A stretch of DNA of 64,000 nucleotides, taken from assembly GCF_018977255.1 (NCBI RefSeq), contig NW_024704771.1:2418001-2482000 (forward strand). Reading direction: 5' to 3'. The first letter of the stretch is position 1. Each line of letters opens with the position of its first letter. This stretch comes from Callorhinchus milii (lineage: Eukaryota). Under the pieces are notes generated by a model that made no database searches, was not told the origin of the DNA, and saw only the letters and a list, made by a program, of their open reading frames with translations. Positions 29,591-59,700 of the stretch are shown in pieces. A program made the position numbers and the translations under genes.

Positions 29591-29732
29591 CTAGCCCTTG
29601 CAGCCGTTGGTTTCAAAGGATTGAATAAAATCATTGACGGCTTTACAGGCGTTTCTGTATTTGGAGAGAAGACATTGGTCGTCAGATGGGATCTCCTCAA
29701 TCCAGGTCTTAGAGTCCAGGACATACTGTATC
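29591..29732 (-). CDS. C4: C4 exon 41 (terminal)
   Basis: [20 protein letters not shown]...[18 protein letters not shown]; 142 nt. Confidence 0.94.
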
Positions 29733-32700: not shown

Positions 32701-35700
32701 GGGTTAGATACCCGGCTGATCACAGAGATGGGTTTCAGCGTGTGCTGGACACCTGGTTAATCATGGAGATGGGTTTCTGTGTGGGTCAGACACCAAGCTG
32801 ATCATGGCAATTGATTTCTACATGAGTCAGACACCCGTCTGAGCAGGATGATGGATTTCTGTTTGGTTCAGACAACATAATGCTGGGTTTCTGCATTTGT
32901 CAGACACCCAACTGATCATGGAGATGGGTTTCCAGTCGATGGAAGAACCACTGACCCCTCACTCTGCCCCTTTTCCATGCTTGTGGTTATTTCTCTGGTA
33001 ACTTACCCTCCGCGCACTCACACACATCTGTGTGGCACAGTGTAGACACCAGGACGCTGTGCTCGGGGGCACTATATGTCACGGTACATTTGACACCTGC
33101 AAATCAGACACATGTGTCAACCTCGTCATATTAACCCTCACGGCTTAAAATGAGCCTTACATCTGACACAGCCATTTCAGTGTAGTGACTATGTAATTCG
33201 AGGGCAGCCAATTTGAGTGCAGTGATGTCCTGCAAACAGCTACGAAATGAGCTGTGAAATGATTTTACGCGGGTGTTGTTGGCCAGGACACCGGGAGAGA
33301 GTGAAAGAGAGAAACTCCCTCCTCTTTTCCAATAGCGTCACAGGATCTTTAACATCCACCTGAACAGGCACATTCGGTGAGCTCAGTTTATTGTCTCATC
33401 TGAAGGATGATGCATCGCTCCCACAAACAGTCATGAATTGAGTGACCAATTTACAATTTTTTTAAAGGAATTATTAACCCCAGAATAGTGATTTGCCAAT
33501 CGAGTAATAATTGGGTTCTGACTTACTGCTGGGTAAACAAGGAGTGTGGAGTAATGATTCTTCACCTGCCTGGGAACCGAGCCTAGGTCTCTCGCTTGTG
33601 AGGTGAGTGCTCTAACCACTGAGCTACAGGACTCCAGACGTGTGAGAATGGAAATTTACACTGGGGAGATATAGATTGCTCTCCCCCTGCCACCCTCCAC
33701 CCTCCCTGCTAGATCCCTTGTGCCCTATTGCACCTTGTCAAGTCGTGTGCCCCCATCCCATGCCTCCTTGTTCCCATCTGGTGCCCCCTAAACCCTACCC
33801 CGCCATCTGTCCATATACAGTCCAGCATAGAAAACAATAATAATAAATTATAATAATGATAATCCTTTCATTGGATATAGCGCCTTCTCAAAGTGCTTCA
33901 GAGAATATTCTGTAAAGTAAATTGACTTTATATATTGTGTGCGAAACACGGCAATCAATTCTGCAAAGCAGTGTCCCATACACAGTGGCATGATTGAGTG
34001 ATGAATTATTATTTATTTTTAAATCATACTAATTTAAAGTTATAGAGAGACATTTGGATGCCTCTTGGTGGCCAGTGGTGATGGCAAAGTCCATGATTAC
34101 TTACTGGGATTGTAGAAGTCATAAAGGGTGGCGGTGGCTGGCTGTACTAGACCCACAGGGACAACTTGGTTTGCAGCAAAGACCACACACTCTTTCTTTA
34201 CACGGACCTAAATAATGGGAAACAGAGTGAGAGAGAGGGAGAGAGAGACAGGAGTTTGGGAGAGAAAGAGAGTGGGGAGGGGGAGGCTCACGGAGAGAGA
34301 GACAGACAGGGGGAGAAAGACAGAGAAAGCGAGAGAGGGGGATAGAGGAGAGAGGGAGGGAGATGGAGATTGGGACGAAGGGGATGAGAGAGTGGGGAAG
34401 GGGGAAAGAGTGAAGGAGGATAAGAGAGGTGTGAGAAGGATAAGAGGGAGAGAAGGAGAAAATGAAGAAGAGGAGAGAGATGAGAGAGAAGGAAGGAGGA
34501 AGGGGAGGAAATGAGGGAGGGGGTAATGACAGGGAATGGAGAGGATGTCAGGAGGGAAGGATGTCAGGAAGAAGAGAAAATAAATTTATAAATTTATATA
34601 GCACATTCAATGTCAAAACATCACGGTGCTTCACAGATAATTGCTATCACATATAGTTACTATTCTCTGTAGAACATGTCAGTCTGGACTGTGAGCTCAC
34701 AATCCCATGTGGGGCTCAAACCCTCAGTATTCACACACAGAGTCAGTGACTCGCGAACCTATAAGAGCTCAATAGTTGTGATTGTAGACGGTGCAAATAA
34801 TACAATACAAAATCATATTTATCCAGCGCCTAACACGTTGAGATGTCCCAAGATGCTGAACAGTCAGGGATTAATACCCAGGTGTGGGTGGGGTGGGGGT
34901 GGGGGTTTGGGATCAGGGAGGGTGGAGGGGATGGGTTTGTGGGTCTGTGCTAGTGTATTTCTTTCTGCCCATTTGTGAGTGTTTGTACCCCGCAGTCCCT
35001 TTGCCTTGCCCCCTCCCTTGCCTCCTTCAAGAACCATCTCAAGACCCGACTGTGTCTAAGGTCACCTTTCTACCCTTCCTCACCCTCAATCCTTCCTGAT
35101 CCCAACCACCAGATGGATCGTCGACTGTCCAGTGCCTTGGAATGTCTTCCTGACGTGAAAGACGCTTTAAATTGTAATTTGTTGCTGTTGTTGTTGTATG
35201 TTTCTTTCTCTCTCTGTCTGCCTGTGTGTTGGTCTGTCAGTTGGTCAGTCTGTCTGTCTGCCTGTGTTTCTGTCTGTCTACCTTTCTCTCTCTATCACTC
35301 ATCTCATACTTACGCAGATCAATTCCCTCCACCTCATTTCTATTCCAGTGTCTTGGGACATCCTCCCAACACGAAAGGCGCTATACACAAGCCATTTTGC
35401 TGTTGTGTTGTATTCCACCAAAGTTACCCCGACCAACTATCACCAACCCCAGAGCCCAAGCCTCACCCAGCCTCCGACCATGTACAACCAATAAGATGTG
35501 AGCCATGATAAGATGTTAACCCACAACACCCACCATGTCGAGGTACAGCAGAACTTTGCCATCCTTCAACTCATACTGGTCGATGTATTTATCCACTCCA
35601 TTTTTTAACTGAAAGACAAGCAAATAATAATAATAATCGTTACATTTGGTACAACGCCTTTCACTTCCCAAAACACTTCACAGGATTCGCTAACAGTTAC

Positions 35701-38700
35701 TGTTTTGTGGACGAAAGCGGCAACCAATTTGCGTACAATAATATTCTTACACTAGAGTGAGTGTAGAGTGAGTGACTGAGATTATTTAGGGGATTGTGTT
35801 GAGCAGGACATCAGGAGAGGGAAACTCCCTTCACTTTTCAAATAGAGCTATGAGATCTCTAACCTCCACCTGGGGACGAGGCACAGATGGTGAGCTCATT
35901 TTAAGGATGCACTAACAACCAGGTTCCTACTTACTGCGAGGTTAACAGAGGGTGTGTGTAGAGTAAGAAAATTGCCTAATATTTCGCCCTGCCGGGAATC
36001 AAACCCAGGTCTCTTGTGTATGAGGTGCTCTAACCACTGAGCTACAGGTCTCCACGAGGACCATTTGGTTGAAGCATTGATTGTGTACCTTTTCGAGATG
36101 AGTTGTATCTGGTTCAAACCCACTGAGCAGGGAGATGTCAACAACTGCCATTCCAGACTTGATCTCATTCAGTTCGATCTCATCCTCCCGCCTGGCACAA
36201 GAGAGGAGGCACATGGTATCAACACCACATTGACAATACAAATAATAATCCTTTACCTTTCATGCAGAGCCTTTCGGGTCAGGCGGGCATGTCAAAGTGC
36301 TTCACAGGATATACATTTTCACCTACAAAATACACCGTCAATTCACTTTACAGTAAATTCTGTGAAGCGCTTTGAGACATCTCGAATGATGTTTGTGGGA
36401 CTCATGATAAGGCCCTATATCAAATAAAAATAATTATAATCCTTGAACAGGATAGATGCAACCTCAGTTTAATAATAATAGCTACATTTGATATAGTGCT
36501 TTTCACGTCTTTGAGATATCTCAAAGCTCTTCACAGAATATACTGTAAAGTAATTTGACTGTATGTTTTGTGGGCAAAACGCGGCAACCAACTCCACACA
36601 ACAGAGTCCCACAAGCAGTTGTGGAGTGAGTGACAATTTATTATTGTTATTTTTTTGAAATAACATAATTATTTAGTTATTTGGGGGAGCTGGGGAAGCG
36701 CAGAATTTTCAGAGGTGCCTGGCTTCACTTTGAGATGTTAAACCGAGGTCCCATCTATACCTGTTTGAGTGGACATTAAAGAGCCCTTGTCAGAATTCGA
36801 AAACAGAACGGAGTTTCTCACTCTCCTGGTGTCCCACTGATTAGTCATTTGTTCATTTTATGGTTGTTTGTGGGAATTGCTCCCTGCAACCTGTCTGCTT
36901 TGTTTGCCCACTAAACACGCAGTCACTTTACAGTGACTTTGAGTGAAGCTTTGAGTGTTTCTAACTTGGTGATGAGCTGAATGCCGAGGATTGTAATGAA
37001 TTAGGTGTGGAGTTGAGACTTTTGCTGTCTTTCAATCTCAACTGCACACCGAATCCAATTTGACTGCATTGCAAAAGGGACCCATTTGATTTTAAGAAAT
37101 CTGTTTAGACGTGGCACAGGGTCAAACTCGGGATTTCACTGACTTCGCTCTACCATCTCTGTCTCCTCCAACATGGCTATGATTGACAGACTGGGCTACC
37201 AGCCAATCAGTCAGTGGCTGCTGTCCAGCCCTTGATTGGCAATTGCTTTTCAGCCAGGGACCGGGGCGGGGGGGGGGGGCAGATGAGGAGCTGTGATTGG
37301 GCTGTCAGTCAGTCAGTCAGTGGGTGGGCTGTGGGTCGTTGAAAATATCAACCCAATTACAAAAGAAGGCCAGATAAACAAGTCAGTTTTGTCCGACTTT
37401 GGCCAACCTTAACTGATTGGGAGGTTCATGAGACCCCTCTGACCACCACCACTGGTTCTGCCACTGCAGATAGACTTGATACAGCCCAAAGGATACAGAG
37501 GAGGGTAACCAAAATGATTGAGGGGATGGAGGGACTCGACTACGAGGAGCGATTAGATAAACTGGGGATGTTCACGCTGAAGGAGAGAAGGTCGAGGGGT
37601 GATACGATTGTGGTCTTTACGATTCTGAAGGGACTAGATAATGTAGATCATGATAAGCTGTTTTATCTTGTACTGAACAGTAGAACTTGAGGACACAGCC
37701 TGAGATTGAAGGGGGACAAATTCAGAGCAAATCTGTGGAAACACTACTTCAGTGAAGTGAGTATTAAACTTATGGAACAGGCTCCCTAGGGAGAACGTGG
37801 AAGCAGAAGATGTCATTTGTTTCAAGAATAAATTAGATAGATTTCTACTAGAAAATAATATATTGGGTACAACAACAAAAAGTTACATTTGTTAGTACCT
37901 TTCACATCGTGAGGGCATCCCAAGTGCTAGACATACAGTATTTACGACCCAAGCTGGGGGTCAGGATTTGGGAGGGTGGAGGGCAGGGGGGGAAATGGGA
38001 CATAGTATATAGTTTGGGACATGACATGTTAAGCGACTGCCTGGAAGGTGAACCAGTCTTCTTTCGCCAGCAAATTCTTATGTTCTTATGATATATCCCC
38101 CACTCCGATCCTCTGCCAATATGCTCACCATGTGCAGACTGTGTAGTAAATGGTTCGGTCAGCCTCTGTCTTGACAACCTCTCGCTTCCTCCGTGACCTC
38201 AAGTCATGCCAACCAATGAGGCCCAATGACTGGTCTTCAGGAAGAATTGTGTTATTGTATTCAAAGTGAGAGTCTGAAGAACAACAATAACTTGGGTTTA
38301 TATAGTGCCCTTAGCATAAGGTGGCATGTTGAATTAACAACAACAGTAAAATTATATTTCCATAATGCCTTTCACATGAGTAGGACATCCCTAGGTGCTG
38401 GAGAGTCAATGTTTTGGACCCAAGCTGGGGGTCAGGATTGGGAAGGGTGGAGGACAGGGGGGGAAGGAGGGTGAAGGAGGAGGTGGGGAACTTGAAGCAG
38501 GCTGGAGACTGATGAATGGAGGGAGCGGGAAGTTTGATAGGGGGGTAGAAGGTCACATAAGTAGGGGAGAGCAAGACCATGGAGGGCTTTGAAGTTGAGG
38601 ACAGGATCTTGAACTGTATCCTCTGTATGATGGGAAACCTGTGGAGTCGGGCAAGAATGGGGGTGATAGGGTCACAGAGCCTGGAGAGGATGCGGGCTGC

Positions 38701-41700
38701 AGAGTGCTGGATGGTCTGCAGCCTGTGGAGGGAGAAGTTAGGGAGGCCAACAAGCAGGGAGTTTGCATACTCAAGCCTGGATGTTATGAATGCGTTTAGG
38801 GTTTCTGCGGCCTACGGTGTGAGATAGTGGCAAATCCAGGTCTCTTGCATGCAAGGCGAGTGCTCTAACCACTGAGCTACAGGACTCCAGAGAGGAGAGT
38901 GTTACTGGCTTCAAGGTATGACTTACCCAGGTATTCCATTTTGCTCTGTATGGTGACCTCCAGTTTGAAGTGTGTGCATGGGTTTGAAAGCTCCTCCAGG
39001 AGACGGTAAGTTTTGAGAAGCTGAAAATTAATAATAATCCTTACATTTGAAACAGCACATGCTCACATGATTGAAACACCTCAAAATGCTTCGCAGGATA
39101 TACTGTAAAGTGCAGTGACTGTATAATTTGTAGACAAATGAGGCAGCACAATTTGTGCACAGCGCCATCCCACAAATAGCCATGAAATGAGTGAAGACTT
39201 TTATCTGCAGAATAATCAGCAGGTCAGCATGAGAGTAACTCCCTTCTCTTTTCTAATAGGTCACAGGATAATAATAAAAAAAATAATCCTTGCGTTTAAC
39301 ATAGGGCCTTATCATGTCTTTCAGATGTCTCAAAGTGCTTCACAGAATATACTGCAAAGTGAATTGACTGTATATTTTGTGGGCGAATCGTGGCAGCTGA
39401 TTGCACACACAGTGTCCCACAAACCGACTTGGATTGAGTGACCAATATATAATTATTATTTATTTTTGAAGGAATTATTACCCCTGGAAAACTGATCCAC
39501 CAATCGACGAACAATCAGGTTCCTACTTACTGCTAAGTAAACAGAGGCAAGTGGAGTTACAAAACTTGCCCAATGTCTCGCCCTAGCAGGAATCAAACCC
39601 AGGTTTCTCGCTTGCAAGGTGAGTGCTGTGAGCTACAGGACTTCACAAATAATAATTGTAAATGACTTACATTCAACGTTCCATTCCCGGTACCTGATAG
39701 CTTGACCTGAATTTTGCTTCCCAGCGGAAACTATGAGAGCAAGAAGTCAAACAGAATATTAATAATAATAGTAATGATATGGCATTTATTACAATGTCTG
39801 TGACATCCAAATCTCACAGTGCTTCTCAAGTAATTTTAATAATAATTCTCACACTTGGTTTCTCATTCTATAATGTTGTTGCATCTCAAAGTGCTTCACA
39901 GGATTGTACTGTGAAGTGCAGTGACTGTGAGTTTTGTGCACAAATGCAACAGCCAATTTATGCGCAGTCCCACAAACAACCATTAAGTAAATGTTCATTT
40001 TTATTTGGTGGGGGCAGGGGGCATTTTCAGCCATTATAACTTGGCTGAAAATGCACTTCAAACAATGCAGTGTGCACCCACCCCACCCCTCCCCGCCCCA
40101 CCCAGCACTGCACTGAAGTGTCAGCCCGGATTATATGAGTTGCAAGTTGTCAACATGCGGCTTCAACTCATAACCTTCTGACTCTGTTCCACTATTGGCA
40201 AACATGCTTTTAGTCACTCTGTTACTGCCTACCTCTGCCTTTCCCCATCTTTGTCCATCTTCAGATCTGAAGACCTTCCTCTTCAACCGACCATATGGTC
40301 ACCTCCCCTCCCTCCCTGGTTTTGTGTCAAGCTCTGTCACTGTTAAGCCCCCCGAGGTGCTGCCTCCACATGAAGGGCGTTGTGTAAATGCAATTTGTTG
40401 TTATTTTAATGTCTGTACCTTCAACTCGGTGCGGCTCAAAGCATTTCTCTTCTGTAAGTAGATTTGCGTCATCCTTCCATTCTCACTGAATTCCACATCC
40501 ATGTTCAGCTGTTCCTTCTCAAAGGTAATCCTGTGGTAAGTAGACAGAGCTTCTAGAGCCACCACTGTGTCCTGCACCGGGAATAAGAGGGGAAGAAATA
40601 GGCAAATGACCTAGGGTTAGCGGAAACAAGTTATGAGACAAGCTAAAGGGGCTCTTCAGCCTTGAGAGAAGACAACTCAGAGAGGATCTCTTAGGTGTGT
40701 CTAAAATTTCAAATGAGATTGAAAAAGTGAGCTGAGCCGCGATTCTGCTCCACCCTCGCCTACCCCCAGGCAAGCGACCGTCACACAGGAGGCCTGTAGC
40801 TCAGGGTTAGAGCACTCGCCTCGCAAGTGAGAAGACCTGAATTTGATTCCCAGGCACGGTGAAATGTTGGGCAAGTTCCTTACTCCACAAGCCTGTTTAC
40901 CTAGCACTAAATAGGAACCCGGATGTTAGTTGATAGCGGATCGCTTTTCTGGGGGTAATAATCCCTTCCAAAAAACTAATAACAATAAATTGGTCACTTC
41001 AATCCACAACTTTTTGTGAGACACTGCTGTGTGCAATTGGCTGCAGTGTTTTCCCCACAAAATATAGTTAATTCACTTTACAGTAATGTAAGTGTACTCT
41101 GTGAAGTGCTTTGAGACGTCTTGAAAACGTGATAAGGTGTAAGGATTATTATCATTATTATTGAACCGGAAGAAATTCCTACCTGTGTTGAGCGGAATCC
41201 TCCACCATAGTTACGTTGCTCTGTCAGCCATTTGGCAATGGTGGATGCAAATGTCTCGTCCTTCATCATGAGGCTTTGCAGCAGAGCATAGGACGTTGCT
41301 TCCACCGCCAAGGCTGAGGCGTGGGAAGGGTTCTTCTCTCCCCCAACTAGTTCCACATCCGTCACCTTCCAGTAGCGAATGTCTTTCTCTGTGTGAACAA
41401 AAACATAAATGCTGCTTGGCCCATTACATAATAATCCTTGCATTTGATATAGCACCTTATTACATCTCCGAGTTGTCTTTTGAATTTAAGATCCTCATCC
41501 TCACCTACAAGGCCATTCACGGCCTCGCTCCCCCCCTACCTCTCTGACCTACTATCCCCCTACCTGCCCGTACCCTCCGTTCCTCTGGCTCCGGTCTACT
41601 CCACATCTTCCGCCCCAACCGCCCTACCATTGGTGCCCAGGCCTTCAGCCTCTCAGCCCCGAGGCTCTGGAACTCTATCCCCCAGTGCCTTTGCCGCTTC

Positions 41701-44700
41701 CTCCCTTTCCTCCTCAAGACCTCAAGACCTTTCTCTTTGACCGTGCCTTCAGCTCCCCTCTCGACTCTCTACTCCCTCCTCGCTCACTCCCTTCCCTCCC
41801 CTCTACCTGACCATTTCCCCACTGCTCGGGTCCTGACCCAACTGTACAGCGCCACTTGGGACGTCCTCCCGACGTGAAAGGCGCTCTATAAATGGAATCT
41901 TGTTGTTGTTGTTGTTTTGGTGCTTCACAATAAAATGAATTGACTGTACGTTTTGTAGGCAAAACGTGGCGGGCAATTGCACACAGCTTTGTCCGTCCCA
42001 CAAACAGTCGTGGATTGATTGATCAATTTTTTTTACATTCCTTGTCAAGATTTGCTGGATCCCTGTCACACAGGATTGACTTCAAAGTCCTCACACTTTG
42101 CACCTGAGCACCAGCCCCACCTCTCTGACCTGCTCAAACCTACTCCTGTAACCATCGCCGTCATTCATCTGTGTCCGGTCTCCTGCTGATACCTCATCCC
42201 ATCTGCTCCAGTATTGACCTCTGGGCTTTCAGCTGCTATGCCCTGAACATATGAAACTCTCTGCCTCAATCCTTCTGCCTTGTCCCCTCTTTGCCAATCT
42301 TCATCTCACGCCTGAAAACTTTCCTGCATAGGCCTACGGTCAGCTCCCCTTTCTCCACAGCTTGCGCCAACTTTCCCATTATTAATTGAATGGCGGATTG
42401 CTTTTCAGAAGTAAAAATTCCTTCAAAAAACCTATAGTAATAAATTGGTCATTTTAATCCACGACGGTTTGTGGGACACTGCTGTGCACAATTGGCTGTC
42501 GCGTTTTGCCCACAAAATATACGGTCAATTCACTTTACAGTGTTTTCTATAAAGCGTTTTGAGACGTCTCGAAGACGTGATGAAGCGCAATATCAAATGC
42601 AAGGATTATTATTATGAGTAGTAAATGTTCTGAGATGCTACCCTGCATGAAGGGCGCAATATAAATCCAGGCTGTTGTTACTATAATGTGCCCCACTACA
42701 GCGCAGGTTCCATTATAATACGGTTTGAGTCGCTGCTGTTTCCTATACTAAAATGGCTATCTTCCTTCTTATTAAGTCAGCGCTGTTTTCCAGGATGTGG
42801 TTTCAGCAGCGACCCAATGACCCGATAGTCAGCCATTTTCTGGATACAAACTGACCGACTTCTAGAGTCACCTGGTCGTCGATGACACCACTTCCTGTTT
42901 TGCTTCCTCTGTGTGGGAGGGGGGAGGTGACCGTAAGCACAATCAAAAAGGAAGATCTTTGGGTGGGATTTGAAGGGGGTAGGGAGGGTGGGAAAGGGGG
43001 TAAGGCAGAGGCATCGTGGAGAGAGTTCCAGAGTTTTGGGGTGTGGTGGCTGAAGGCATGACAACCGACAGTGGCAATGCCACCCACTGTTACCTCTCAG
43101 CGAACTCACCTCTGTTGTAATAGGCCAGGTCCTTCAGCTTTCTGTGAGCCTTCACTGACCCAGGACTATCTGGACTGGCCAACGTGAGTGCATAGGCAGC
43201 GATAGCGGTTACAAAGGGGTGCTTGATACTCGGCACTTCCTTGTGCAGAAAACCGAGAGCCTTCGCGATACTATTTTTCTGGAAAAAAAGCCAAGAATAA
43301 GCCTGGAATCTGACCTTGAATCAAGACCCTTTTCTTCGACAGTGCTTTCGGTCACTCTCATACCCTTCCTGCCCCAAATTACCCCAAACCCCTCCCACTG
43401 CTCAGGTCCAAATCGCTGGCTGTTCAGTGTCTTTAGATGTCCTCCCGATGTGAAAGTTGCAACACAAATGCAATTTTGCATTGAATCGTATTCATAAAGC
43501 AATTCCCAGGCACTCCCAACATTGGGATCATAGTGTGTCTCTACCGAATTGGGAGGTGCCATCTTGTAAATGAGGAGGTTAAACCTTGCTATCCATTTAT
43601 GCCTGTTCAGGTGGCAGTTAAAGTTCCCATAGTGATAATCGAAAAGAGAAGAGAGTTTCTCTCTCCCTTCAATTCCCCAATCTCCTGCAAAACTCCCCCC
43701 CCAAATTAGTTGCTCCATGACTATTTGCGAGATGTTGCTTTGTGCAAATTGGCTGCTGCATTTGCCTACAAATACCGGGTAAAATCTGTGAAGTGCTTGG
43801 AAATGTCTCAATAATGTGAAAAGCCACTTTATCAAATTCAAGAATTATTATTATTATTACTATTATTATTTTGTGCATAGCAAAGTCTCACATAGAGTTA
43901 CAGGAAGAATGTATGATTTTGTTGGGGGATTGTCAGCCAGCACAATAGGAGAGAGAAATTCCTTTCTCTTTTTAAATAGCACCATGGGATCTTTAACGTC
44001 CACTTTAATAGGCACAGATGGGGCCTTGGTTTAATGCCTCAGCTGAAGGATGGCATCTCCAAAAATGCCACACTCCCCCCCAGCATTACACTGAATTGTC
44101 AGACTAGACAGTGAGCTCAGGGTCCCCAAATGAGGCTTGAACCTTCAACCTTGTGACTCAGATTTGGGGGAGAGAAAGTAAGAAGGTAAGTTATCTATCA
44201 CCTTACCACTTGTGTAACTGGGATGATGTCATGTCTCTTATATGAATCCAAGGAATGCTGCAAGGCGATGGTAACAAAAGCGGTCATGGATACCAAGCTT
44301 TCAACTCCTCCCTGAAAATACACAGGGGAGAATTTTAAAGACAGGTGCAGAAAAGAAAAACTAAAGTGTAAAATCATACAACGACACCAGACACAACCGA
44401 TCACACCCAACCACCCACAACCACATGCAACCAAACACACACGTCCATGTAAACACTCGCAATTACACACATCTACACAGACATATGCAACCAGCCACAC
44501 AACCACACAGTGACACACTCAACCAGCCACACACAACCCAACGAGACCCTCACAAGCAGACACTCACAACTACACAGAGAAAAGTGTGGGAGAGAAGAAA
44601 TAGTGTTAGAACTTTACACAAGATTGGTTCAGGTGAAGAAAGCCTTTGGTCCCATCTAATCTGATTCTTCCAGAACACACACCCATAGTGTCCTAGAATC

Positions 44701-47700
44701 ATAGAATTATACAGCACCGAAGGAGGCCATTCGGCTCATCATGTCTGTGCCAACTCTTTGAAAGAGCTATGCAAATTAATCTCACTCCCCTGCTCTATCC
44801 CAATAGCCTTGCAAACTTGTCCTTCTCAAATATCTATCCGCTTCCCTCTTGAAAGTTGTTATCAAATCTGCTTCCCCCACCCATTCAGGCAAACCATTCC
44901 AGATCGAAACAACTCAGTGTGTGAAAACAAATCTCCTAACCTTCCCTCAGGGTCTTTTGACAACTATCTGTCCTTCCATTACTGGATCAAGCTGCTTTTT
45001 AAATAACCCCCAGTGTCCTGGCCTAACCCACCATTCCTGGTAATCCTGTTCCCATTGTCAGTTCCTCTCTGGCTAAAGAAAAACATCCTGGTGTCTTTAT
45101 CCTGAAATTGACCTTTACAACTCCAAACCAATGTCCTGCTGTCAAGGTTCATCTGAAAGTATTGATCTAAATTTATGTGACCTGCATCTCTCTTGCCATC
45201 ACGGGATGGGGATCTTCAAAGTGGCCGGAGCTGTTCTGAGCATTGATCAGATAAGAAACAGATTTGTGGATGAACATGTCGTTGACAATGATGTGCTTCC
45301 TGGCGATCGAGAGGATTTTAACCATAAATGCTGTTAGCCTGAAAAGGTAAAAAAAAAAAGGCGATGAGGAGAAATTTCAGCTCATATTTATGCTGATACT
45401 CCTGTGGAGGGCCGTCCTTTCTATGAGATGTCAAACCAAGCTCCCTATCTGTATCTGTCCAGGTGGACGTTAATGAACCCTGTGGGAGAAGGGATTTCTC
45501 TTTCCCAATGTCTTGGCCAACAATACCCTAGATAAAATTGGTCATTCATTTCATGGTTCCTTGTGGGACAAATTGGCTGATGCATTTGCCTACAACACGC
45601 AGTCGCTAAATTTTGCATGTTTTATTTATACAGTGCCCTTCATTGGGGTAGCATCTTGGTGCACTTAATGTTAGTGGAATTTGATGCTGAGCCGGCGAGA
45701 AAGGGGAGGTGATCATAGGCACGGTCAAGGACAAAGGTATTCAGGTGCGATCTGAAGAAGGGGACAAGGTGGAGGGCCTGAGGCAGGGAATGATAGGTTC
45801 TCGGTGCGCAGTGGCTGAAAGATGGCTACAGATGGTGGAGTGAGCGTGGGTACAAGGGATATGCAGAAGGACTGAACCAGCTGACTTCATAACAGATCAT
45901 GGCTATGAAATCTATCACAAAATGTGATATTTCTTCACCCCAATAAATACATGTAAATCTCACCACACACTGCTTGGAGTTTCCTTCCACGTTCCATATG
46001 ATCCATCCGCTTTCTGATACTCCAGAATCTTTGTATAACCTGGAATTGAACCATGGAGTTTGTATTAAAATAAGTCCTGTAACTCAGTAACCTCCCATCA
46101 CAAGCGAGAGACCTGGTTTTGATTCCAGTTTCCTTACTCTACATGCCTCTGTATACCTAGTAATAAGTGGGAACCCAGTTGTCAGTCGATTTGCAGATCG
46201 CTTTTCCGGGGGTAATAATTCCTTAAAAATTAATAACTTGGTCACTCAATCCACAACTCTTTCTGGGACACTGCTGTGCACAATTGGCTGCTGTATTTAG
46301 CCAATAGTCCACTGGCTCCCTGTCACTGAACAGAGTGATTTTAAGATCCTCACAAGATCCTCACATCCATCGTGCCCTGGCACCTCCCTACCTCTCCGAC
46401 CTGCTTACTCCCCAAACCACAACCGCTGCCTCCGCTCGACTGGCTTCGGCCTTCTCCATGAATCATGTGCCCTCAGTTCCACTATCGGTGGCCACACTTT
46501 AAGCCACTACACCCTGAAACTCTGTAACCCTCTTCCTCCATCCCTCCACCTTGCCCCTTCCTTCCCCATTTTCAGGTCGTGCCTGAAGACGTTACTATTC
46601 GACTGTGCCTACGGACACCTCCCCCTTCCCCTCAACTCGGAGTTGTGTTCCACCACTGTCAAGCACTCTGGGAGGCTACAATGCATGAGGGGTGCAATAT
46701 AAATACAAGTAATTGTTGTTGTTATTTTTCAATCCTATTTAAAATCTTATCCCGGTTCCCCTCTGAGATGCTTCCCTCGAGACTGAATTGGCTTAACCTT
46801 GTCTAATCTCTGAATTGTCTTAATCCAGACTTTGGCTTGTGTCAGACAGAATGAGCCCATCATTCCCTTATTCAGACTCTGTGTGAGGATGAAGCAGGAG
46901 GAAGCTGAGATCAGCACCTGTCTTAATGTTGGCCAGAGCCTGGTCCTTGCGCTCTGATGGCAGATGCAGCCACTGCTGGCTCTGGTCCAAGTATTCAACG
47001 GCGTAAACCGTGGGAGCCAAGTGCATTGCAGTCTGCTCTGCACACCCGGTTGGTACTCTGATCAGACGGTTAATACCCTCTGGAGACAGGGAGTTTTCAA
47101 TGGATTCACCCATCAGGTCACCTGCACCAGCGTGGGAGAGAGGATGGTAGAGAGAAGGTTAGTAACTATTAGCATGTGCAATGCCAGTGTGTTGCGCTTG
47201 AGTCTGAAGTTTGTGAGTTCAGGCCGCTCGTTGAAACTCATAGAATCTAAGTTGATGCTCCAATGAGGAGTACTGCATTGTTGGAGATGTCATTCTTCAG
47301 ATCAGTCATTAACCCGGGATCCCCTCTGTGCCTGTTCAGGTAGAAATGAAAAATCCTCTGGAATTATTGGAAAAAGAAGGGAGTTTCAGCCAACAATCCA
47401 CCAAATAAATTTGGTTATTCACTTGGTTGTTTGCTGTACATTGCTGTGTGCAAATTAACTGCCTTGTTCACTCACAGAAAACATGCAGTCACTGCACTTT
47501 ACAATAAATCATGTGAAGCGCTTTGAGACATCTTGACAACACAAGACACTATATTAAATACAAGGATTATTATTAATAATAATGACCATCAACAATCCTT
47601 GCATTTAATCAAGGACCTATGATATTGAAAACAAAAACAGAAGTCGCTGGGAACACTCAGCAGGTAAGGCAGCATCTATGGAGAAAGGCAGTAAGTCAAC

Positions 47701-50700
47701 ATTTCAGATCCATCACCCTTCGTCAGAATGGGTCAAAATCTATGATATTGAATCAGCTCAAAATACCGCGTATGGAATTGCTGCAGTGACTCTCTTTTTG
47801 TGGATAAATAGGGCATTTGGTTTACAGCAAAGTCCCACACACGTGAACTAGTGATTATCTGGGGTATTGTTGACCAGGACACTGGGGGAGAGAAAGTCCC
47901 TTTACTTTGCCAATAGCATCCGGGATCTTTAACATCCACCTGAACAGGCGCAGAAGGGATCTTGGTTTAACGCCTCATCCAAAGGTCAGCACGTCTGATA
48001 ATGCAGTGCTCTCCCACTGGAGCATGAGCTTGGATTGTGAGCTCAAACTCCCAAAGATGATAAGGATTAAAGAACATTATTTAAATATTAAACAACATTA
48101 AAGTCATCTTTTAATCACAAAGGTTAAACCATTTCAGATTTCATGCTAGAGTAGGTTAACAACATGAGTGTGTACAATTCGGTACCATGACCTCTAGCCT
48201 ACATTGGTTTATTCAGTCTTTACCTTACCTCTGGCTTTGATGTACAGGTAGGATTCTGTGTCAGGGACCTGGTTAAGAGGAGTTTCTGTATTTATGTCAT
48301 GCGAGCGTCTCACTGAAACAAAAACGCATGAAGGAAATCTCTGTTATAACGCATTTCTTTATGGCAAATTTAGTTTGGCATATGCCTGTTGCCCACGGGA
48401 AGCTTGCAGGAAGCTCCTGGTACCTACCACCAATCTAGTGAGGGCTCAAAACCCACATTTGCAGATTTTGAATGACCAAATAGTGACTATCTTCCTTGGG
48501 GTTAGGTAAGTGGGGTCTCTTTGGAAATGCTTGTCAATGGAATGTCAGAATTGAGCCAGCCTGTGTGACGGACTCCAGTCCAGTTCCTGAGCCAGGTCTG
48601 CAGTATTCCAGGGCACTGCTGATGGCAGCACAGCCAACCTGGCTGATTGGCAGGACTTGGAAGGGCAGACCAGCCATTGAGGGCAGGGAGTCATCAGCTC
48701 CTGTTAACCTGAAAGCCAAAGGCCCTAATGGGTAGGATGGTCATGCAGCAGGAAAGCTTGCCAGCCAGTAATGCCAATGGCAAGCTATGTGGTTTTAGCT
48801 GGCTAGATGTTACCACAATGCACACTCTGGGGTCCCCAAGCCTTGACTCTTGCCAACCTGCTCTGAATACTTTTCGAAGTTAGGTAAGCAGGTCGAGTCC
48901 CTCCAGGGAGAGAGTGTGCCTTCCATACCAAGAATCTATCTCTGGAATTTCTATATGTAGGGGAGGTGCATGGACATCTCAATTAGTTTGGATACTTTTA
49001 AGTATGGTAATGAGTTTCCACATTTGTCAGACACCCGGATGACCAAAAAGTAAATGCCTGTTCACCTTCCATGTGCCCACCTATACAAAATAGATGACTC
49101 CAGTTGTCAGGTCACCGCCAACTTCACTTCCTGTTCTCACGAGCAAAACAGGAAATGTCGTCGGCAGCGACCTGATGACCCTGACTCCTAGAGGTTGGCC
49201 ATTGCAGCTTTGCTCATGAGCTTAAAAAAATGATCACAAGGCCCTCCCGGCAATGCTACATCCTGTCTTCCGTACACAAACAAGACACGAAATCGGCTGT
49301 GATCTGATAATCTGAATGTCAGTCATTTTGCCATCAGTGCAGGAAGCAGTCACCCACCCCACTTAGCATTTGTACAATGGAACCTCACCCAGTGGATTAA
49401 TAAGAAGGCTCGTCTCTTCGGTCTTCATCACACCTTCCTCCTGCAAAATAAAGGGCTAACGTAGGTTAACAGAGCAAAACATTTTGCTGAAGTCACAAGA
49501 TCAGATAAGAAGTCCCTTCTGCCCATCTGATCTCATCCCTCCAGAGCACCAACCCTACCGTCCACCCAAGATGGCATCAAGCTGCTTTGTAAATTAATTC
49601 CAACGTCTTGGCTTCAATCACCCTTCCTGGTAACTCTGTCTCAAATATTAATGACCCTTTGCTCCATCTCAGTCCTCAGGGAGGCATCTTCCTTTGGATA
49701 ACAATATTCCTTGCAATTGATGCAGCGCCTTATCACATCTTAGAGATGTCTCAGAGTGCTTCACAGAATATAGTGAAAAGTAAATTGACTGTATATTTTG
49801 TGAGTGAAATGCGGCAGCCAATTGTACACAGCAATGTCCCACAAACATTCGTGGATTCAAGTGACCAGTTTATTATTTTTTTTAATGAATTATTACCCCC
49901 AGAAAAGTGACCCACCAATCGACTAACAACCTGCTGGACAGCAGCTTACTGCTAGGTAAACAGAAGCATGTGGAGTAAGGAAACCACTGAGCTACAGGAC
50001 GACATGATAAGACATGAAACCAAAGAAAGAAACAGGCACTACATTTGATAACTATTTGTGGTGGAGTCCTTTGAGACATCTTTCTGTTGTAGTCACTGTC
50101 AAATCATAATAATAATAATAGAAATGTAATTTCATTTGATATAGTGTCTACTTGTATCATGAAGATAACTCAAAGCTCTTTATAACAATCCTTGCAGTGC
50201 CTGTGTATTATGAAGGCAACGTGGCAACCAATTTTCACACGGCAACATCCCACAAACAGCCATCAAGTCAGTGTCCAATTTTATCTGAGTGATTGTCAGC
50301 CAGAACACCATGAGAGAGAAAATCCCTTTTGCTTTCCAACAATACTACAAGATTTTTAATTGTCCACCTGAGCAGGGCACCAACGGGATCTAAGTTTAAT
50401 AGACAGTGCTTCTAACAACGTGCCCCCCTCCCACAAACAAGTCAATGGAGTGTGAGCTCAAAGTCTCCAATATGGGCCTTGAGCCCATAACCTGCTGACT
50501 CCGAGATGAGTGTGTGATAGACTGAGCCAGGTTTAGACCTGGACGTGAGTATGATAATAATAATCCTTCAATTTGATATAGTGCCTCATCACGTCTTCTA
50601 GGCATCTCAAAGCATTTCACAGAATATAATGTAAGGTGTGTCGACTGTATATTTTTTACATGTGTATCTTGCTTCATACCACAACTCTCAGGTGCTTGAG

Positions 50701-53700
50701 AAGAGCATCTCTCTGTCCACTTGTGCTGAGTGCAACCACATGGATCGGGATATTCCCAGCCACCAGTGGAACGATTGGAAAGCCCAGGGAATGGGCAGAG
50801 TTTCTTCTGACAGTAATAACTCGGGCTTCATCCTTTGAAGTGGCCGGGCTACAGAGACCATCAGCTCCCCTCATGTACACGAAGACCTGAGAGACACGGA
50901 GTGTGTGGGAAGGGATAGGGGAGAGTGGGGGTGAGAAAGCACAGGGTCACACATTCGCTATTCTCCACATGAAACAATCCCCATCTTTATACACATTCAT
51001 GGAATTAAGTAAGGAACCTTCCATAACCAGTTACAGAATTAATCTTTAATAACTAGTCACACTGATACCAAATGTAATTGGTAGTTATTAAACAGACTTT
51101 ACCCACAGAGTCATGAACACGGACACAAATACACACAACCTGGGTTAGTAACAGCCTGGGTTAGTTGATAGACATGGTGAGTTAATAAGTAATAATAACA
51201 ACCCTTGCATTTGATATAGCACCTATCACGACTCTGAGATGTCTCAAAGTGCTTCACAAGATTTACTGTAAATTAAAGATATATTTTTGTGGACGAATGT
51301 GGCAGCCAACTGCATATAGCAGTGACCTACAAAAGTCATGGATTGAGTGATGAAATTATCATCATTATTTTTTTTGAGGGATTATTATCCCCGGAAAAGC
51401 AATCTGCCAATCGACTAACAGCCGGTTCCTACTTATTGCTAGGTAAACAGAGGCATGTGTGTGTATGGAGTAAGAAAACTTTTGCCCTGCTGGGAATCAT
51501 TCCCAGGTCCTCTTGTTTGTGAAGTGAGTACTCTAACCACTGAGCTACAGGTGTCCACATGCCAGACCGATTCACAGATTGGATTTGTTACAGCCTGGGT
51601 TAGTTGATAGACCAGGTTAGTTGTCAGACCAGGTTGACAGATTGGGTTTGATGACAGACGAGTTCTGTTGGCCTCTGTACCTGGATATCCTGGGCGAGAT
51701 AGTTGTACAATATCACTCTCACATCCACCTGCTCATTCCTTGTCACCGCATTCGGGAGTCTCATTGATATAAAAAACTCCTGGAATACTGTCAGTTTCTT
51801 GGATTCCGCGACACAGAATCCTGAAGAATTAAAACAAAATTCCAACATTTGTAAACTGTTCCCTAAATCCATCTTTTTTATACTGATTTATGCAATTTTT
51901 ACACAGATTTCACAATTTTACATAATTAATAATGATATTCCTTGCACTTGATATAGCACCTTATTACAACAACAACAAGATTTCATTTATTGAGCGCCTT
52001 TTATGTCGAGAGGACGTCCCAAGGCACTGGACAGTTAGGTCGGGACCTGAGCAGGGGGTAAATGGTCAGGGTGAGGGGAGGGAAGGGAGGGAGCGAGTAG
52101 AAAGTCGAGAGGGGAGCTGAAGGCACGGTCGAAGAGAAAGGTCTTGAGACCGGCATTGAAGGAGGAAAAGGAGGAGGCGGCGAAGGCACTGGGGGATGGA
52201 GTTCCAGAGCCTCGGGGCTGAGAGGCTGAAGGCCCGGCCACCGATGGTAGGGCGGTTGGGGCGGGGGATGTGGAGCAGACCGGAGCCAGAGGAACGGAGG
52301 GTACGGGCAGGTAGGTAGGGGGATAGTAGGTCGGAGAGGTAGGAGGGACAAGGCTGTGAATGGCCTTGTAGGTGAGGATGAGGATCTTGAATCAATCCTC
52401 TGGGGGATGGGGAGCCAGTGGAGGTGAGCGAGGGTGGGAGTGATGTGGTCCGTGTCTGGTGCGGGACAGTACACGAGCTGCAGAGTTCTGGATGACCTGC
52501 AGCTTGTGGAGGGAGGTGGCGGGAAGGCCGGCGAGGAGAGAGTTCCCATAGTCCAGCCTTGAGGTGATAAAGGCGTGGACCAGAGTTTCAGCCGCGTGAG
52601 GGGTGAGGTAGTGCCGTAGTCTGGCGATGTTTCGGAGGTGATGGAAGGCGGTGCCAGTTGTGGTGCGGATATGAGGAAGAAAGGACAGCTCAGGGTCGAA
52701 CAGAACCCGAGGTTCCTGACCGGCTTTGAGAGGTGAAGAGTGCAGCCTTGGATGCTGATGCTGTCAGCACCTGAGGTGCGGAGGCGCTGACGTGAGCCAA
52801 TCAGGAGGGCCTCAGTTTTGCACATGTTGAACTAAAGAAAGTTGTCTCTCGTCCAGACTCGATGACAGACAGGCAGCTGTCAGGACATCGGGGTCGTGGA
52901 GTTGAGGGTAGAGGAGGAAAGGTAGAGTTGGGATTATCAGGTATTATCATTGAGCCATCTCAAAGCACTTCACAGAATATACTGTTAAGTGAATTGACTG
53001 TATATTTTGTAGGCAAATCCAGGCAGCCAATTGCACACAGCAATTTCCCACAAACAGTCATGGATTGAGTGACCAATTTTTTTTTGAACGAATTATTCTA
53101 CAGTGTGCATTGTTTTTGGGAGAGTGGGGCATAACTGCTGGAGTCTAAAGACCTAAAACCATTGAGAGCACTGTCTGGTAAGTTTACCATTGTTTAACCC
53201 AAAGCACATTACAGGTTATTACACATTACTGGGCTGCTGTGCTCACCCACAATTTACTGTACAGTTACAGTATTTTGTGGGTGAGCACAACAGCCCAGTT
53301 TACACACAACAATGTCCACATAAACAGCTATGAAGGTAAGTGACCAATTTATTTTGGGGATTGTTGGAGAGACAGAGGGAAACCCCTTCTCTTTTCCAAT
53401 AGCATTGCGGGATCTTCATAATAATCCTTGCATTTGATATAGCAGTTTATCACGTTTTTGGGACGTCTCAAAGTGCTTCTTATAATATACTATAAAGTGA
53501 ATTGACTGTATATTTTGTGGGCAAAATGCGGCAGCCAATTGTGCACATCAGTGACCACATTCAGTCGCGGATTGAGGGGCCAAATTATTATTAATATTTT
53601 TGTTGGAAGGGATTATTATCCCTGGAAAAGGGATCACCAATCAACTAAGTACCGGGTTCCTACTTACTGTTAGATAAACAGGTGTTTGTGTGGAGTGAGG

Positions 53701-56700
53701 AAACTTGCCCAACATTTAACTGTGAGGAGAGAGTGAGGAGTGAGGTTCAATGTCTCACACAAATGTCAGAAACTCCCTTGTGCTGATTGGAGCAACAGTT
53801 TAGATTTTCCTGATGTTGGGGTTGAACCCACAATCTCTGCTTCTGAGCCGAGTGCACTATTGACTATGTCACACTGATGCACAATCGGAAATCTGCTCCA
53901 ATGCTCAGCTGAAAGAACGATACCAAGACTTTAAGGGTTGAATTATGAGGATAAGTTGCATAAAGTTAGTTTCTATTCCCTTGTCTTTAGAAGGTCGAGG
54001 GGTGATCTGATTGAGGTGTTTATGACGAGAAACGGATTTGTTAGTGTAGATGCAGTGAAACTATTTCCCCTGGTGGGGGAGTCAAGAACAAAAATCATTT
54101 TAAAATTAGAGCCAGGCCATTTAGGAGGGAAACCAGGAGGCAGCTTCTCACCCAAAGTGTGGTGGAAATATGGAACGCTCACTCTCAAAAGGCTGTGGAT
54201 GCTGGATTCACTCACATCTTCAAGACTGAGGTATATAAATATTTGTTAGCTCAGATTATTAAGGGATATGGGACAAGGACGAGTAACTGGGCTTGAGGTA
54301 TAGATCAGCCATGATCTTATAAAATGGCAGAACAGGCTGGAGTGGCTGAGTAGCCTACTCTAGTTTCTATTATCTATGTATTTATGATATTAAGGAATTG
54401 GTTTACCTTTATTGTCAAACATGGCGACTGCTTGAATCTCCCAGGTTGTGATGGAGTCAGGAATGCGAGCCGACAATCTAAAATTTTTTTGAAAAAATAT
54501 TTGTTATCCCTTACTAACAAAGAAAAATAATTAACAAATCTTTATACTTTTCAAATATCTTAGTGGTCTCGCCCCCAACCCCCTGATGCCCCCCTTCTGT
54601 GACCTCCCACCCCTGCCCATTATTGTCACAAGGCAGCCAATTGCGCACAGCAGTGTCCCACAAACATTAATGGATTGAGGGGCCAATTTAATAAATTTTT
54701 TAAGGAATTATTACCCTTGGAAAAGCAATCCGCTAATCAACTAACAACTGAGTTCCTACTAACTGCTAGGTAAACAGAGTTGTGTGGAGTAAGGAAACTT
54801 GCCTGATATTTCACCCTGTTCAGGAATCGAACCCAGATCTCTTGCGTGGGAGGCGAGTGCTCTAAACACAAGCTACAGAACTCCTATTTGAATGATATGA
54901 GTTTAAATTCCAATGTGAGGCTTGATCCCACAATTTTATGAGTGCTGTTGTCTGAGCCAGCCTGACCCGGTGGGCACTTTAGAGTTGGAGGGACTTGAGG
55001 ATAGAGTCCGAGCAATGGGGACTGAGTGGGTAAAACATCCCTCACTGATGGGGTAAAATGTTTCTGAGGGAAGATCTTACGTGTGGTTTCCTGGACCCTG
55101 AACTCGGTGGTTCCCCCACAGCCAACTGTGAGGGAAGATACTGCGAACATGGATTGACGTCTCATCAAAAAACTCCTCAAACTCCAATGGCAGAGCTGTG
55201 AGGGGAGGAGATACAGAGTGTGATGATTATACAGAGCTGTGAGGAGAGAGAAAGTGGAGATTATACAGAACTGTGAGGAGAGAGGGTGGAGAGTGCCGAG
55301 ATGTGAGGAGAGAAAGGGGAGATTACACAGAGATGTGAGGAGAGAGTGTGGAGATTACAGAGATGAAACAGACAGGCAGAAAGAGAGACAGAAAGAAGAG
55401 GCAGCCTGGCAGGAGTTGGATGGGTAGGCTGGCAGGCAAGCAGGCACACAATGAAACAGACACAGACAGAATGAGAGATAAACAAAGAATCAAAGATAGA
55501 AAGAAATACAGAGAGACAGACAGCCAAATGGACAGGGGGTGAATGGATGGACAGACAGACGAACAGAGGATGGAAAGACACACAGAAAGAGGAAGAGACA
55601 GACAGACTAATAGAGAGACAGAGACAGAACATACAGATAGACAGAGGGACAGACAGAGACAGACAGAGCCAGACGAAGACAGACACAGACACAGACACAA
55701 GACAGGCAGAGACAGACAGAGACAGACACAAACAGATAGAGACAGACAGAGACAGACAGATGGCGTTTCTTACATCTGGCCACTGACCGCACATTCAGTG
55801 ACTGGTTTCTCCTTAGCTCGACTCCGTACTGACAACAGAGCAGGAAGACCGCCCTGCACCTCCGCTCTCTCACCCTCTCCACTCGACGGCCACAGCTGTA
55901 CCTCATCGGGATCTTGGTCAGTCCATCCGTACAGCACTTCCTGAGCCTGGGCTCAGTGTACTGATTCACTGGAAGACAAACAGGCAGAGCCGTCAGCCTG
56001 TCAGCCTGGCTCAGTCAGCAACACTCACGTCTCTGAGTCAGAAGCTTGTGGGTTACAGTCCAACATTGGCCACAAAATATAAAGTCAATTCACTTTACAT
56101 TATATTCTGTAAATTTCTTTGAGACATCTTGAAGGCCCTATATCAAATGCAAGGATTATTATGTCAGCTCACAATCTAAGATGCTTTATTGCAGAATGGA
56201 TGGATTTCCAGATCCTCACACTCACACACAAATCATTTCACCTTCCTACCCCTCTGACCACTCACACTCTACTCCACTACCCAATGCTCAGCCATTGCTC
56301 GGCTGGCTCTTATTTTCTGCATGTCCCTCATACTCTCTGCTCCACAATCGGCAGCTGTACTTCTAGCCATCATGCCCTGAGGCTCTCCTACTGCCTTCCT
56401 CAATCATTGCCTGTCTGCAACTCAATGTTGACAAGACGGAAGTCACATTCATTTGCTCCCATCAATATCTTCTATCCTGCAACTCTGACCTCCTTAACCT
56501 CTGCGACGTATCCCTCAGACTACCGAACCGTGTGCAACGTAAGCGTCAGGTCCAACTTACAGCTGTCCTTCCTTCCCCACATCCGGTCCCTGACCAGGAC
56601 CACATTCCTCTGCCTCTGTAAAATTGCTCACCTCCATGACTTCTCGACTCAACTTCTCAAAGGCCCTCTATTCCACTAACTCCACCATGCACAGGATCCA

Positions 56701-59700
56701 GCTAATCCAAAACACTATTGCCCACATACTCATCCGCACTAATCTCCGTACCCCCATCACACCAGTTCCCTATCACTAAATGGATCAATTTCAAGATCCT
56801 CACACTCATTTTCAAATCCCCTCATGCCCTTGCAGCTCTCTACCTCTCCGACCTGCTTCACAACTCACAACCCATTCCTCTGTTATTGTTGTTTGTTGTT
56901 GTGTTGTCGACTTGCTTCGGCCTTCTGCATATCCCTCGTACCCTCCGTTCCACCATTGATGGCTGCGCTATCAGCCATTATGCCCAAAACTCTGCAGCCC
57001 TCTTCCTCTATCCCTCAATTTTACTCTTTCCTTCCCCATCTTCAGGTCATATCTGAAGACCATCCTATTCAACTGTGCCTTTGGTCACCTCCCCTGGCTC
57101 GGCGTCATGCTCTACCACCGTCAAGTGCTCTGGGACGCTTCCCCTGCATGAGGAGACGCTAAATAAATGCAATTTTTTGTGGTTGTTATCTTGAGATTGC
57201 ATCTGAAGTTCTTCCTCTTCGACAACACTTACAGTCACCTCGCCTCTCACCTGGCTTGGCGTGAAGGATGCTATATAAGTGTAAGTTGTTGTAAATCACG
57301 CTTACATCCTTCCTCTTTGAACGTGCCTATGGTCAGCTCCTCCTACCCTCTCCCTTGGTGTCCGACCCCTGTGCAGCGCTCTGAGACATTACTGTTCAAG
57401 ATAGGGTACTGTGTAAATGTGAATTATTGTTTTGGTTCCTACATTTGTTGGTGTATTCTTTCTGAACATCCAGCGATCGTTTCTGCCTCCTGGCATCTTC
57501 CTCACATGAATATCCTGAATGTGGAACAAACAGTGCAACAAGGTTGTTTTGGAGACTTTTAAGCATGATGGTAGGTTTTTGCATGGTTCACACACCCGGT
57601 TGAATGAAAAGAAGCAATAACTTACAGAATCGAGATGCTTCTGAACAAGCAATCTTTCAGGCGGGAAACTGAGGGGTATTTTTTACCTTTACGAAATTCT
57701 GACTTTGCCACATCAGAGAGAAATGTCAGTCCGGCATCCATAAATACTCCAACAGTGTTTGCTCCACCTCCATAATAACACCCTAGGTCATACGAGTTCA
57801 TCGCTTCAAAGACCTTTTGACAAACCAACAAGGTTACTGCCATTACCACAACAAATATAAACCAACAGCAACTTGCATTTATTGGGTAACACTAGTAACA
57901 CTTCACAGTGATTAACAGTGGTGGGTCTTGTCACTGAGCCAGAGAGAGGTGGGAGTTAGGCAGGGTCAAAGAGGAAGGTCTGAAGATAGGTGAGGTAGAG
58001 GGAGCGAGGTAGAGGGATTGAAGCAGAGTGATAAAGTTTCGGGTGCAGTGACTGATTGAAGAAAGCATTGGAGAAACCGAAATAAGAGGTAATAACAATC
58101 CTGGCATTTGATGAAGCAACTCTCACATCACACGATATACAGTAAAGTGAAATGACTGTGTATTTTGTGGGAAACGTGGTATTCAATTCGCGCACAGCAA
58201 AAGCACAAACCAATTTTATTTGGAGGATTCGTGGCCAAGAGAGAGGTACTAACTTCTCTTTTCCAATTGGCCATTGGGTCCTTTAAAGTCCACCTGACCA
58301 TAGTCCTTGTGGTTTAACGTCTCAACCGAAGTACTGTGCCTCCGATAATGCAGCATTCCCTCCAGCACTGAACTGGTGTAGAGTGAGAGAGTGATTGTAG
58401 ACGGTGTGTGATGTGGAGTCATGAGAAAGTCACTGCATCACATCACTCTGGAATTCCCTTCCTCACTCCCTTCGCCTCGAGGGCACTATATAAATTCAAG
58501 TTGTTGTTGTTGTTGCAGAATGAGACTCCACATACCTTTCTGGCTGTCAACTTGTACTTGTTGTTCACAATGTAAACAGCTGAATCCACAGCCACCATGG
58601 CCACATCGGCAGCATCATCCGTGCTCAGTATGACATTAAGGTCACTGCCGGGAGCGTGCCTTTGATCCATCTCCTTTACTTCAATCTGACAAAGGCGAGC
58701 ACAGAGCCACATATCACATGAAGGGTCAATATACTATAATAATCATAATAGTATAGTGCCCTAATACATCTCACAGGATACACTGTAATGTGTAGTGACT
58801 GTGTACTTTGTGGGCAAAACACAGCAGCCAGTTATGCACAGCATTGCCCCGCAAACAGCCACTCAGCGAGTGACCAAGGTTATTTGGGGGATTTGTCAGA
58901 CAGGACACCAGGAGACAACCTCCCTTATCTTTTTGAATAGAGCCAGAAGATCTTCAACACCCACCTGAACATGCAAAAGGGACCTCACTTTAACATCTGA
59001 ATAATTAATATTGATAAGTGATAACAATTAACATTAATTATTAATAAATAACATTAATTAATAATAGCTAACATTAATTTATAATAATCAACTAATAATA
59101 ACTAGGAATGATAATTAATTAATATTAATAATTAGTGATTAACCGTTAATCGTAATAAGTAGATCGAGTTCAAGATTCTGGTCCTCACCTTTAAATCCCT
59201 CCATATAACTCTATGTTACTTTATGTAACATTGTGTTACTCTATGTTATACACTACTCTATGTAACTCTGTGTTACTCTATATTATTCTATGTAACTCTA
59301 TGTTACTCTGTGTTACCCTGTGTTACCCTGTGTTACTTGATTTTACTCAATGTGATGAGTTGGTTGTGAAAGCCTTACCTTTCCCTCACATTCGTCCTTC
59401 ACATCGACCCATAAAGAGTTGGCCACCATCTCGCTCCTGTGGTCATTACCGATGTAATAATAGGCAATGAGGCGAAACGTCGGGACCAGACTCACATCCA
59501 CTGGGATGGTAAGTTCAGTCTTTTCCAACCTGCGGGTCTTACCAGCTCGAACTACTCTGCCCTTGTTTGTAACCTGTGGGTACAACAAACCAGAGAATTA
59601 CTGGGCAGGACTGGGGTAAAGGAGGAGAGATGACAAGACGGGTCTCAGCCTTGACTCAGTTATGCTCTCACCTCTAGACTTAGAAGCTTGTAGGTTGGAG

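Follow-up and report, generated by a model that had tools for sequence, protein, structure and literature searches.

An MHC-linked elephant shark complement C4 with alanine at the thioester-catalysing position is probably a non-His paralogue rather than a third specificity class

The 64,000-nucleotide stretch of the elephant shark (Callorhinchus milii) genome analysed here, positions 2,418,001 to 2,482,000 of contig NW_024704771.1 and hereafter the window, carries part of a complement C4 gene whose product has Ala at the position that catalyses the thioester reaction in His-type C4s. A preliminary description of this DNA had proposed that the Ala defines a third, amine-preferring specificity class of C4 linked to the MHC (major histocompatibility complex), an interpretation that our analysis supports only in part. 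We consider it likely that the gene is the elephant shark member of a non-His C4 paralogue lineage, in which Ala is one of several interchangeable non-His residues and does not mark a specificity class of its own.

The catalytic column of cartilaginous-fish C4s carries this reading. Across the 10 non-His members of our gene tree the column reads AAMADVTVMD, comprising five states and ranking 7 of 319 TED columns by entropy, although it is flanked by invariant P-V...Q-G-G. Ala is found in Callorhinchus, Heptranchias and Pristiophorus, Met in Heterodontus, Hypanus and Leucoraja, Val in Mobula and Pristis, and Thr in Stegostoma, with Asp confined to Sphyrna and Cetorhinus among the non-His-clade sequences seen. 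All 15 members of the His-type clade have His there. When evaluating the Glu at column +2, we observed conservation as E/D in the His clade but EDDDNADAAK in the non-His clade; the thioester motif is nevertheless kept in 10 of 10 non-His members. Because Ala, Met, Val, Thr and Asp interchange freely and the partner Glu decays, it appears to be the absence of His that matters and not the presence of Ala. Taken at the level of sequence, the variability of the column and the decay of the Glu indicate that the catalytic apparatus has been lost, and not that Ala has a special role.

Under parsimony on the gene tree, placing Ala at the root of the non-His clade requires 5 amino-acid changes and 6 nucleotide steps, compared to 7 and 8 for Asp, and Ala is probably the ancestral state of this clade with Asp derived. 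Such ancestry would favour the proposal that Ala defines a genuine third C4 specificity class, functionally distinct from the His-type and Asp-type, as would the fact that Callorhinchus, Heptranchias and Pristiophorus all retain Ala despite a synonymous codon difference. In Heptranchias, the one orthologue in which the codon was read at the DNA level, Ala is encoded by GCG and the exon end is identical (MQ followed by gt). It is also conceivable that a charged Asp and an uncharged Ala would differ finely in nucleophile preference. We nonetheless regard a third class as unlikely: the same orthologous gene has Met, Val, Thr or Asp in other species, the partner Glu is not conserved, and the known mechanism assigns Asp no catalytic role. 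Human C4 variants with Ala or Asn at position 1106 are also said to be C4A-like. Given that the absence of His, and not Ala itself, appears to be what matters, we do not accept the third class put forward in the preliminary description.

What the loss of His would mean for reactivity can be framed by the established mechanism of human C4. In C3 and C4B-type proteins, the His attacks the activated thioester to give an acyl-imidazole intermediate that reacts fast with hydroxyls and water. Without the His, the exposed thioester would react with nucleophiles directly only, and this direct attack would favour amino groups and slow hydrolysis, as in human C4A. C4A-type thioesters reportedly hydrolyse about 10-fold more slowly. 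The elephant shark protein has the parts for activation and covalent attachment and carries an intact thioester motif without the catalytic His, and by analogy it is reasonable to expect an amine-preferring C4 with a longer-lived activated form, that is, C4A-like chemistry. Consistent with this framework, PMC3916388, citing Carroll et al. 1990, states that whether human C4 prefers to form amides (C4A) or esters (C4B) depends on Asp versus His at 1106, and a preprint (bioRxiv 10.64898/2025.12.13.694092) describes the catalytic His as working through an acyl-imidazole intermediate that prefers hydroxyls.

The Ala itself is encoded within a 13-residue peptide on the minus strand at 45220-45182, of which the span first noted (45182-45215) covers 11 residues. 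Reading the minus-strand exon bears out the GCA codon, which lies 2 substitutions from the Asp codons GAY and 3 from the His codons CAY, in keeping with the earlier statement that at least two would be needed. In an ungapped HMMER alignment to PDB 1hzf (E=3e-66) over FQDPCPVLDRSMQGG, the Ala falls under human C4A Asp1106, and two MAFFT alignments, one with 120 homologues and one with 69, put it in the same column, confirming the equivalence to human position 1106. The protein thus has neither the His that defines an H-type nor the Asp that defines a D-type at this column. PVMAREMQ is common to three C. milii sequences, XP_007908431.1 (an older model), XP_042200730.1 and V9K886 (UniProt), although a handful of other residues vary among them, and none of the available C. 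milii sequences has a His or Asp that would contradict the genomic reading. A sequencing error at this codon, already judged implausible at the outset, was rejected because Ala is present in these three independent C. milii sequences and in two shark orthologues. We likewise rejected compensation by the His of the upstream DPHP, which the preliminary description had raised as a possible substitute in catalysis, since this His also occurs in shark C4s of the His type (DPHPVIHR) and in the D-type C4s of turtles (DPHPVMDR).

We placed the gene using a maximum-likelihood tree (69 rows, 1688 columns) for which the catalytic column was taken out of the alignment and C3-like rows served as outgroup. 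All cartilaginous-fish C4s fall in one clade within C4 (support 100), which splits into a His-type clade (98) and a non-His clade (100). The elephant shark His-type C4 stands at the base of the former, and the C. milii Ala gene stands at the base of the 10-row non-His clade, with rays and sharks branching after it as in the species tree. The D-lineage of bony vertebrates (birds, turtles and ray-finned fish) forms a clade separate from the cartilaginous-fish non-His C4s, and forcing the two together costs 199 log-likelihood units (approximately unbiased (AU) test, p = 1e-75). Given the separate clades and the AU result, we identify the gene as the orthologue in chimaeras of hammerhead C4-2 and of the 'c4a-D' gene of Verissimo et al., and not as a member of the D-lineage. 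By this tree, the lineage is the product of a duplication specific to cartilaginous fish that preceded the chimaera/elasmobranch split. An 11-residue signature of the chondrichthyan non-His lineage is present in 13 of 13 members, the C. milii gene included. The one orthologue coding sequence available is ~59% identical to the C. milii gene in protein, a divergence at which synonymous sites would be saturated, and the C4 orthologue genes span more than 100 kb in Heterodontus, Pristis, Cetorhinus and Stegostoma. The tabulation and tree that the preliminary description had called for show that the gene is separate from the D-lineage and that Ala is not fixed within its own clade.

The tree also contained a further C4 lineage, restricted to sharks, that branches from inside the His-type clade. 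Its Heterodontus member combines GCAEQ with Asp, and its other members have GCTEQ and a one-residue deletion, with G, S, P or R in the region of the catalytic column. Separately, a skate C4 with GCVEQ and Ser sits among the ray His-type genes.

The identity of the gene as a C4, recognised in the preliminary description, was upheld. Spliced alignment and tblastn with XP_007908431.1 ('complement C4-like [Callorhinchus milii]') recovered coding exons spanning 63.7 kb to 29.6 kb, with 31 of 31 introns GT-AG and 1292 consecutive codons open; the 5' exons for MG1-MG3 lie past the window end, and MG1-MG3 and the signal peptide are present in the public C. milii protein models. When translated, the window agrees residue for residue with XP_042200730.1 ('complement C4-A [C. 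milii]'), whose gene lies on GCA_018977255.1 scaffold MU249860.1 at ~2.45-2.49 Mb. The TED region has its hit in XP_007908431.1, a model from which the window differs at six residues overall. The third sequence, V9K886 ('Complement C4', 1686 residues), is presumably mRNA-derived, like the UniProt series to which it belongs. PDB-wide HMMER E-values were best for human C4 (3e-66, 1hzf), followed by C3 (4e-46), C5 (5e-45) and A2M (5e-38), and an AlphaFold2 model of the TED (predicted local distance difference test 87.8, predicted template modelling score 0.90) found its best match in C4Adg 1hzf (TM-score 0.87/0.91). Judged from the encoded protein, the RRQKR and RSRRKR processing sites, the anaphylatoxin domain and the C345C end, the last with a frame break in this assembly, make up the three-chain plan of C4 and not that of C3 or C5. 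The intact thioester motif, also as first described, is not GCGEQ but GCAEQ, the usual C4 motif outside mammals (homologue alignment; PMC7768046). We found no extra C4-like exons elsewhere in the window. Some 700 bp downstream of the gene, a 38-bp stretch at 28888-28925 matches a segment of the last C4 exon (29601-29638) at 92% identity and is probably a trivial fragment. An N gap at 29758-29893 falls within the last C4 intron.

The window assembly departs from the other C. milii sequences at one point near the 3' end of the gene. The penultimate coding exon is one base short relative to the frame of XP_007908431.1 and V9K886, resulting in an in-frame TGA TAA at which XP_042200730.1 ends (1625 residues), while XP_007908431.1 and V9K886 continue to 1686 residues. 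The 61 C345C codons past the stops are intact in the next frame, and all C345C/NTR exons are present in the window despite the break at ~30505, which could reflect either an error in the assembly or a truncating allele. The loss of these last 61 residues in the window assembly, together with the relaxed catalytic dyad, would fit a decaying or non-functional copy in which Ala is a symptom of lost constraint. This we consider very improbable, since the open codons and GT-AG introns noted above, the two other full-length C. milii sequences, the retention of orthologues on both sides of the chimaera-elasmobranch split, in at least 10 species and always with the thioester unchanged, and the derivation of hammerhead C4-2 from a named transcript record all argue against a pseudogene.

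Closer inspection of the thioester region identified a His that sets the lineage apart. His989, four residues after the thioester Gln985 (window 47021-47023, minus strand; GCAEQTAMH), occurs in every member of the non-His clade and in none of the His-type clade, a distribution shared by only two other TED columns. In the AlphaFold2 TED model a helix starts at residue 28, so that Gln30 and His34 lie on one face and are separated by a single turn. In a set of 202 thioester proteins, 71 have the canonical His and not one of these has a His at +4, and a His at this position recurs in amphibian C3-like paralogues (Leptodactylus, Rhinatrema and Bombina) with Ala or Met at the catalytic column, as well as in a sardine C3-like protein. 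Its diagnostic invariance, its modelled position relative to the Gln, its recurrence in these C3-like proteins and its mutual exclusion with the canonical His might suggest that His989 is a relocated or auxiliary catalytic residue, in which case non-His C4s would not be simply uncatalysed. We think this quite unlikely. The pattern comprises only about three independent lineages, and the structural support is the position on the modelled helix. A nucleophile fixed one turn from the thioester would also lack an evident activation switch and could make the native thioester less stable, and the position is Tyr, Phe or Leu in most C4s, so the His may be a packing variant. If true, a relocated His would be an arrangement that arose more than once and would define a class of thioester proteins whose reactivity had not been recognised before.

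Several points weigh against reading the gene as one with interchangeable non-His residues and C4A-like behaviour. The variability of the column could also reflect diversifying selection for different specificities and not neutrality, and the invariant His at +4 has no explanation under this reading. The amine preference and half-life of cartilaginous-fish non-His C4s are extrapolated from human C4, and where the argument leans on the human 1106 Ala and Asn variants, it leans on what they are reported to do. Finally, the copy in the window assembly carries the frame break in its C345C exon, though intact C. milii copies exist.

Table 1. Coordinates of the C4 and tapasin features in the window
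Feature	Position	Strand	Remarks
Complement C4 gene (non-His paralogue), partial	29591..64000	-	32 coding exons, residues ~334-1686 of XP_007908431.1
Beta-alpha chain processing site RRQKR	57477..57491	-	
Anaphylatoxin (C4a) exon	55774..55968	-	six Cys; ends ...VRSVAR before the activation cleavage site; Pfam ANATO PF01821 recorded for the product
Thioester exon	46918..47121	-	GCAEQ at 47047-47033, then T-A-M-H at 47032-47021
TED exon with the catalytic-position column	45182..45338	-	157 nt, AG/GT borders; LTAFMVK... in translation; 100% identical to XP_007908431.1
Ala codon GCA, residue 1097 of the C. milii protein	45194..45196	-	equivalent to human C4B His1106 / C4A Asp1106
Alpha-gamma chain processing site RSRRKR	38182..38199	-	then ...TIYYTVCTW as in the human gamma chain
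In-frame TGA TAA after ...RLGSEF	30500..30505	-	one-base frame break in the penultimate coding exon, 30594-30463
Tapasin (TAPBP) gene, complete-looking	6118..24947	+	tail-to-tail with C4; tblastn V9KRF2 'Tapasin long form [C. milii]'
Tapasin exons (approximate)	6118-6189, 12864-13115, 13796-14065, 14653-14997, 20650-20979, 23774-23896, 24900-24947	+	14653-14997 IgV; 20650-20979 IgC1; 23774-23896 transmembrane

The surroundings of the gene agree with the MHC linkage claimed in the preliminary description. Its immediate neighbour is tapasin, an assignment further supported by PDB matches to tapasin/TAPBPR and by a 457-residue V-set plus C1-set neighbour in the public annotation. The N gaps at 6.5-20.6 kb fall between tapasin coding exons, and every coding exon recovered lies outside them. 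One 4.1-Mb scaffold carries both this gene and the His-type C4, which is ~0.8 Mb distant and adjoins a tubulin gene. Because it stands tail-to-tail with tapasin and ~0.8 Mb from the His-type C4, we regard the C. milii Ala-type C4 as MHC-linked. Among the orthologues, the Val-type gene of Pristis pectinata (a sawfish) has, on the opposite strand and no more than 10 kb away, an MHC class I gene (MHC_I plus C1-set), and the Heptranchias gene has only a 7tm gene within 10 kb; both C4 types and tapasin occur on contigs of the same length, and so most likely on one chromosome, in Heptranchias, Heterodontus and Pristis.

An overlap of the window with the His-type C4 locus was rejected, as only repeats resembling short interspersed nuclear elements (SINEs) are shared. 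The SINE-like repeat is ~320 bp long and present in many copies (e.g. 11313-11647, 24507-24828, 26729-27049 and 62622-63180), which match those of the His-type C4 locus at 84-96% identity. Two long tracts of low complexity in tapasin introns lie beside N gaps: one at ~16000-20200 is A/C-rich on the plus strand with extreme GC and AT skew and translates as T-H-T-H, and the other, roughly 1.1 kb at ~20970-22100, is of triplet type.

Comparison with known C4s places the gene more precisely. Like the C. milii gene, human C4A encodes a three-chain C4 whose thioester is intact and whose catalytic column lacks His, and the two would be expected to share a mechanism of direct, uncatalysed amino attack with a longer-lived activated state. 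They differ in having Asp versus Ala and GCGEQ versus GCAEQ, and human C4A stems from a recent mammalian duplication whereas the C. milii paralogue predates the chimaera-elasmobranch split. The elasmobranch 'c4a-D' genes, including Sphyrna zygaena C4-2, belong to the same orthologous clade and share the 11-residue signature; both they and the C. milii gene stand beside genes of the MHC class I pathway (MHC-I in Pristis, tapasin in C. milii), but Sphyrna and Cetorhinus have Asp where C. milii has Ala. The bony-vertebrate D-lineage resembles the C. milii gene in being a non-His C4 with GCAEQ kept beside a His-type C4, yet it is not orthologous, is uniformly Asp and reportedly lies outside the MHC, whereas the C. 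milii gene adjoins tapasin. The elephant shark His-type C4 ('LOW QUALITY PROTEIN: complement C4') shares species, scaffold, domain plan and GCAEQ with the Ala gene but has only 55% TED identity to it, and differs in having PVIHRDMQ at the catalytic position and TSIL, versus TAMH, after the thioester.

The Ala state of holocephalan C4 and its MHC linkage are already known, which answers the question, raised in the preliminary description, of whether the residue had been reported. Verissimo et al. 2023 (PMC10751288), citing Nonaka et al. 2017, describe holocephalan C4 'with catalytic H or A', and two C4 genes and the GCAEQ motif have been noted in the elephant shark (PMC7768046). To these reports the present analysis adds the probable ancestry of Ala, the exclusion of the gene from the D-lineage, the C345C frame break and the clade-invariant His at +4.

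Collectively, the C. milii gene is most likely an ordinary non-His, C4A-like C4. Whether activated C4 attaches mainly to carbohydrates or instead to proteins, immune complexes for example, is decided by the switch between His and non-His. The findings amount to a modest refinement, in which the 'D-type' C4 of cartilaginous fish would be better described as an 'anything-but-His' lineage (Ala, Met, Val, Thr or Asp), independent of the bony-vertebrate D-lineage. The pattern in the catalytic column offers natural evidence for the textbook view that the Asp of C4A is not catalytic, and supplies natural variants with which that view may be tested.

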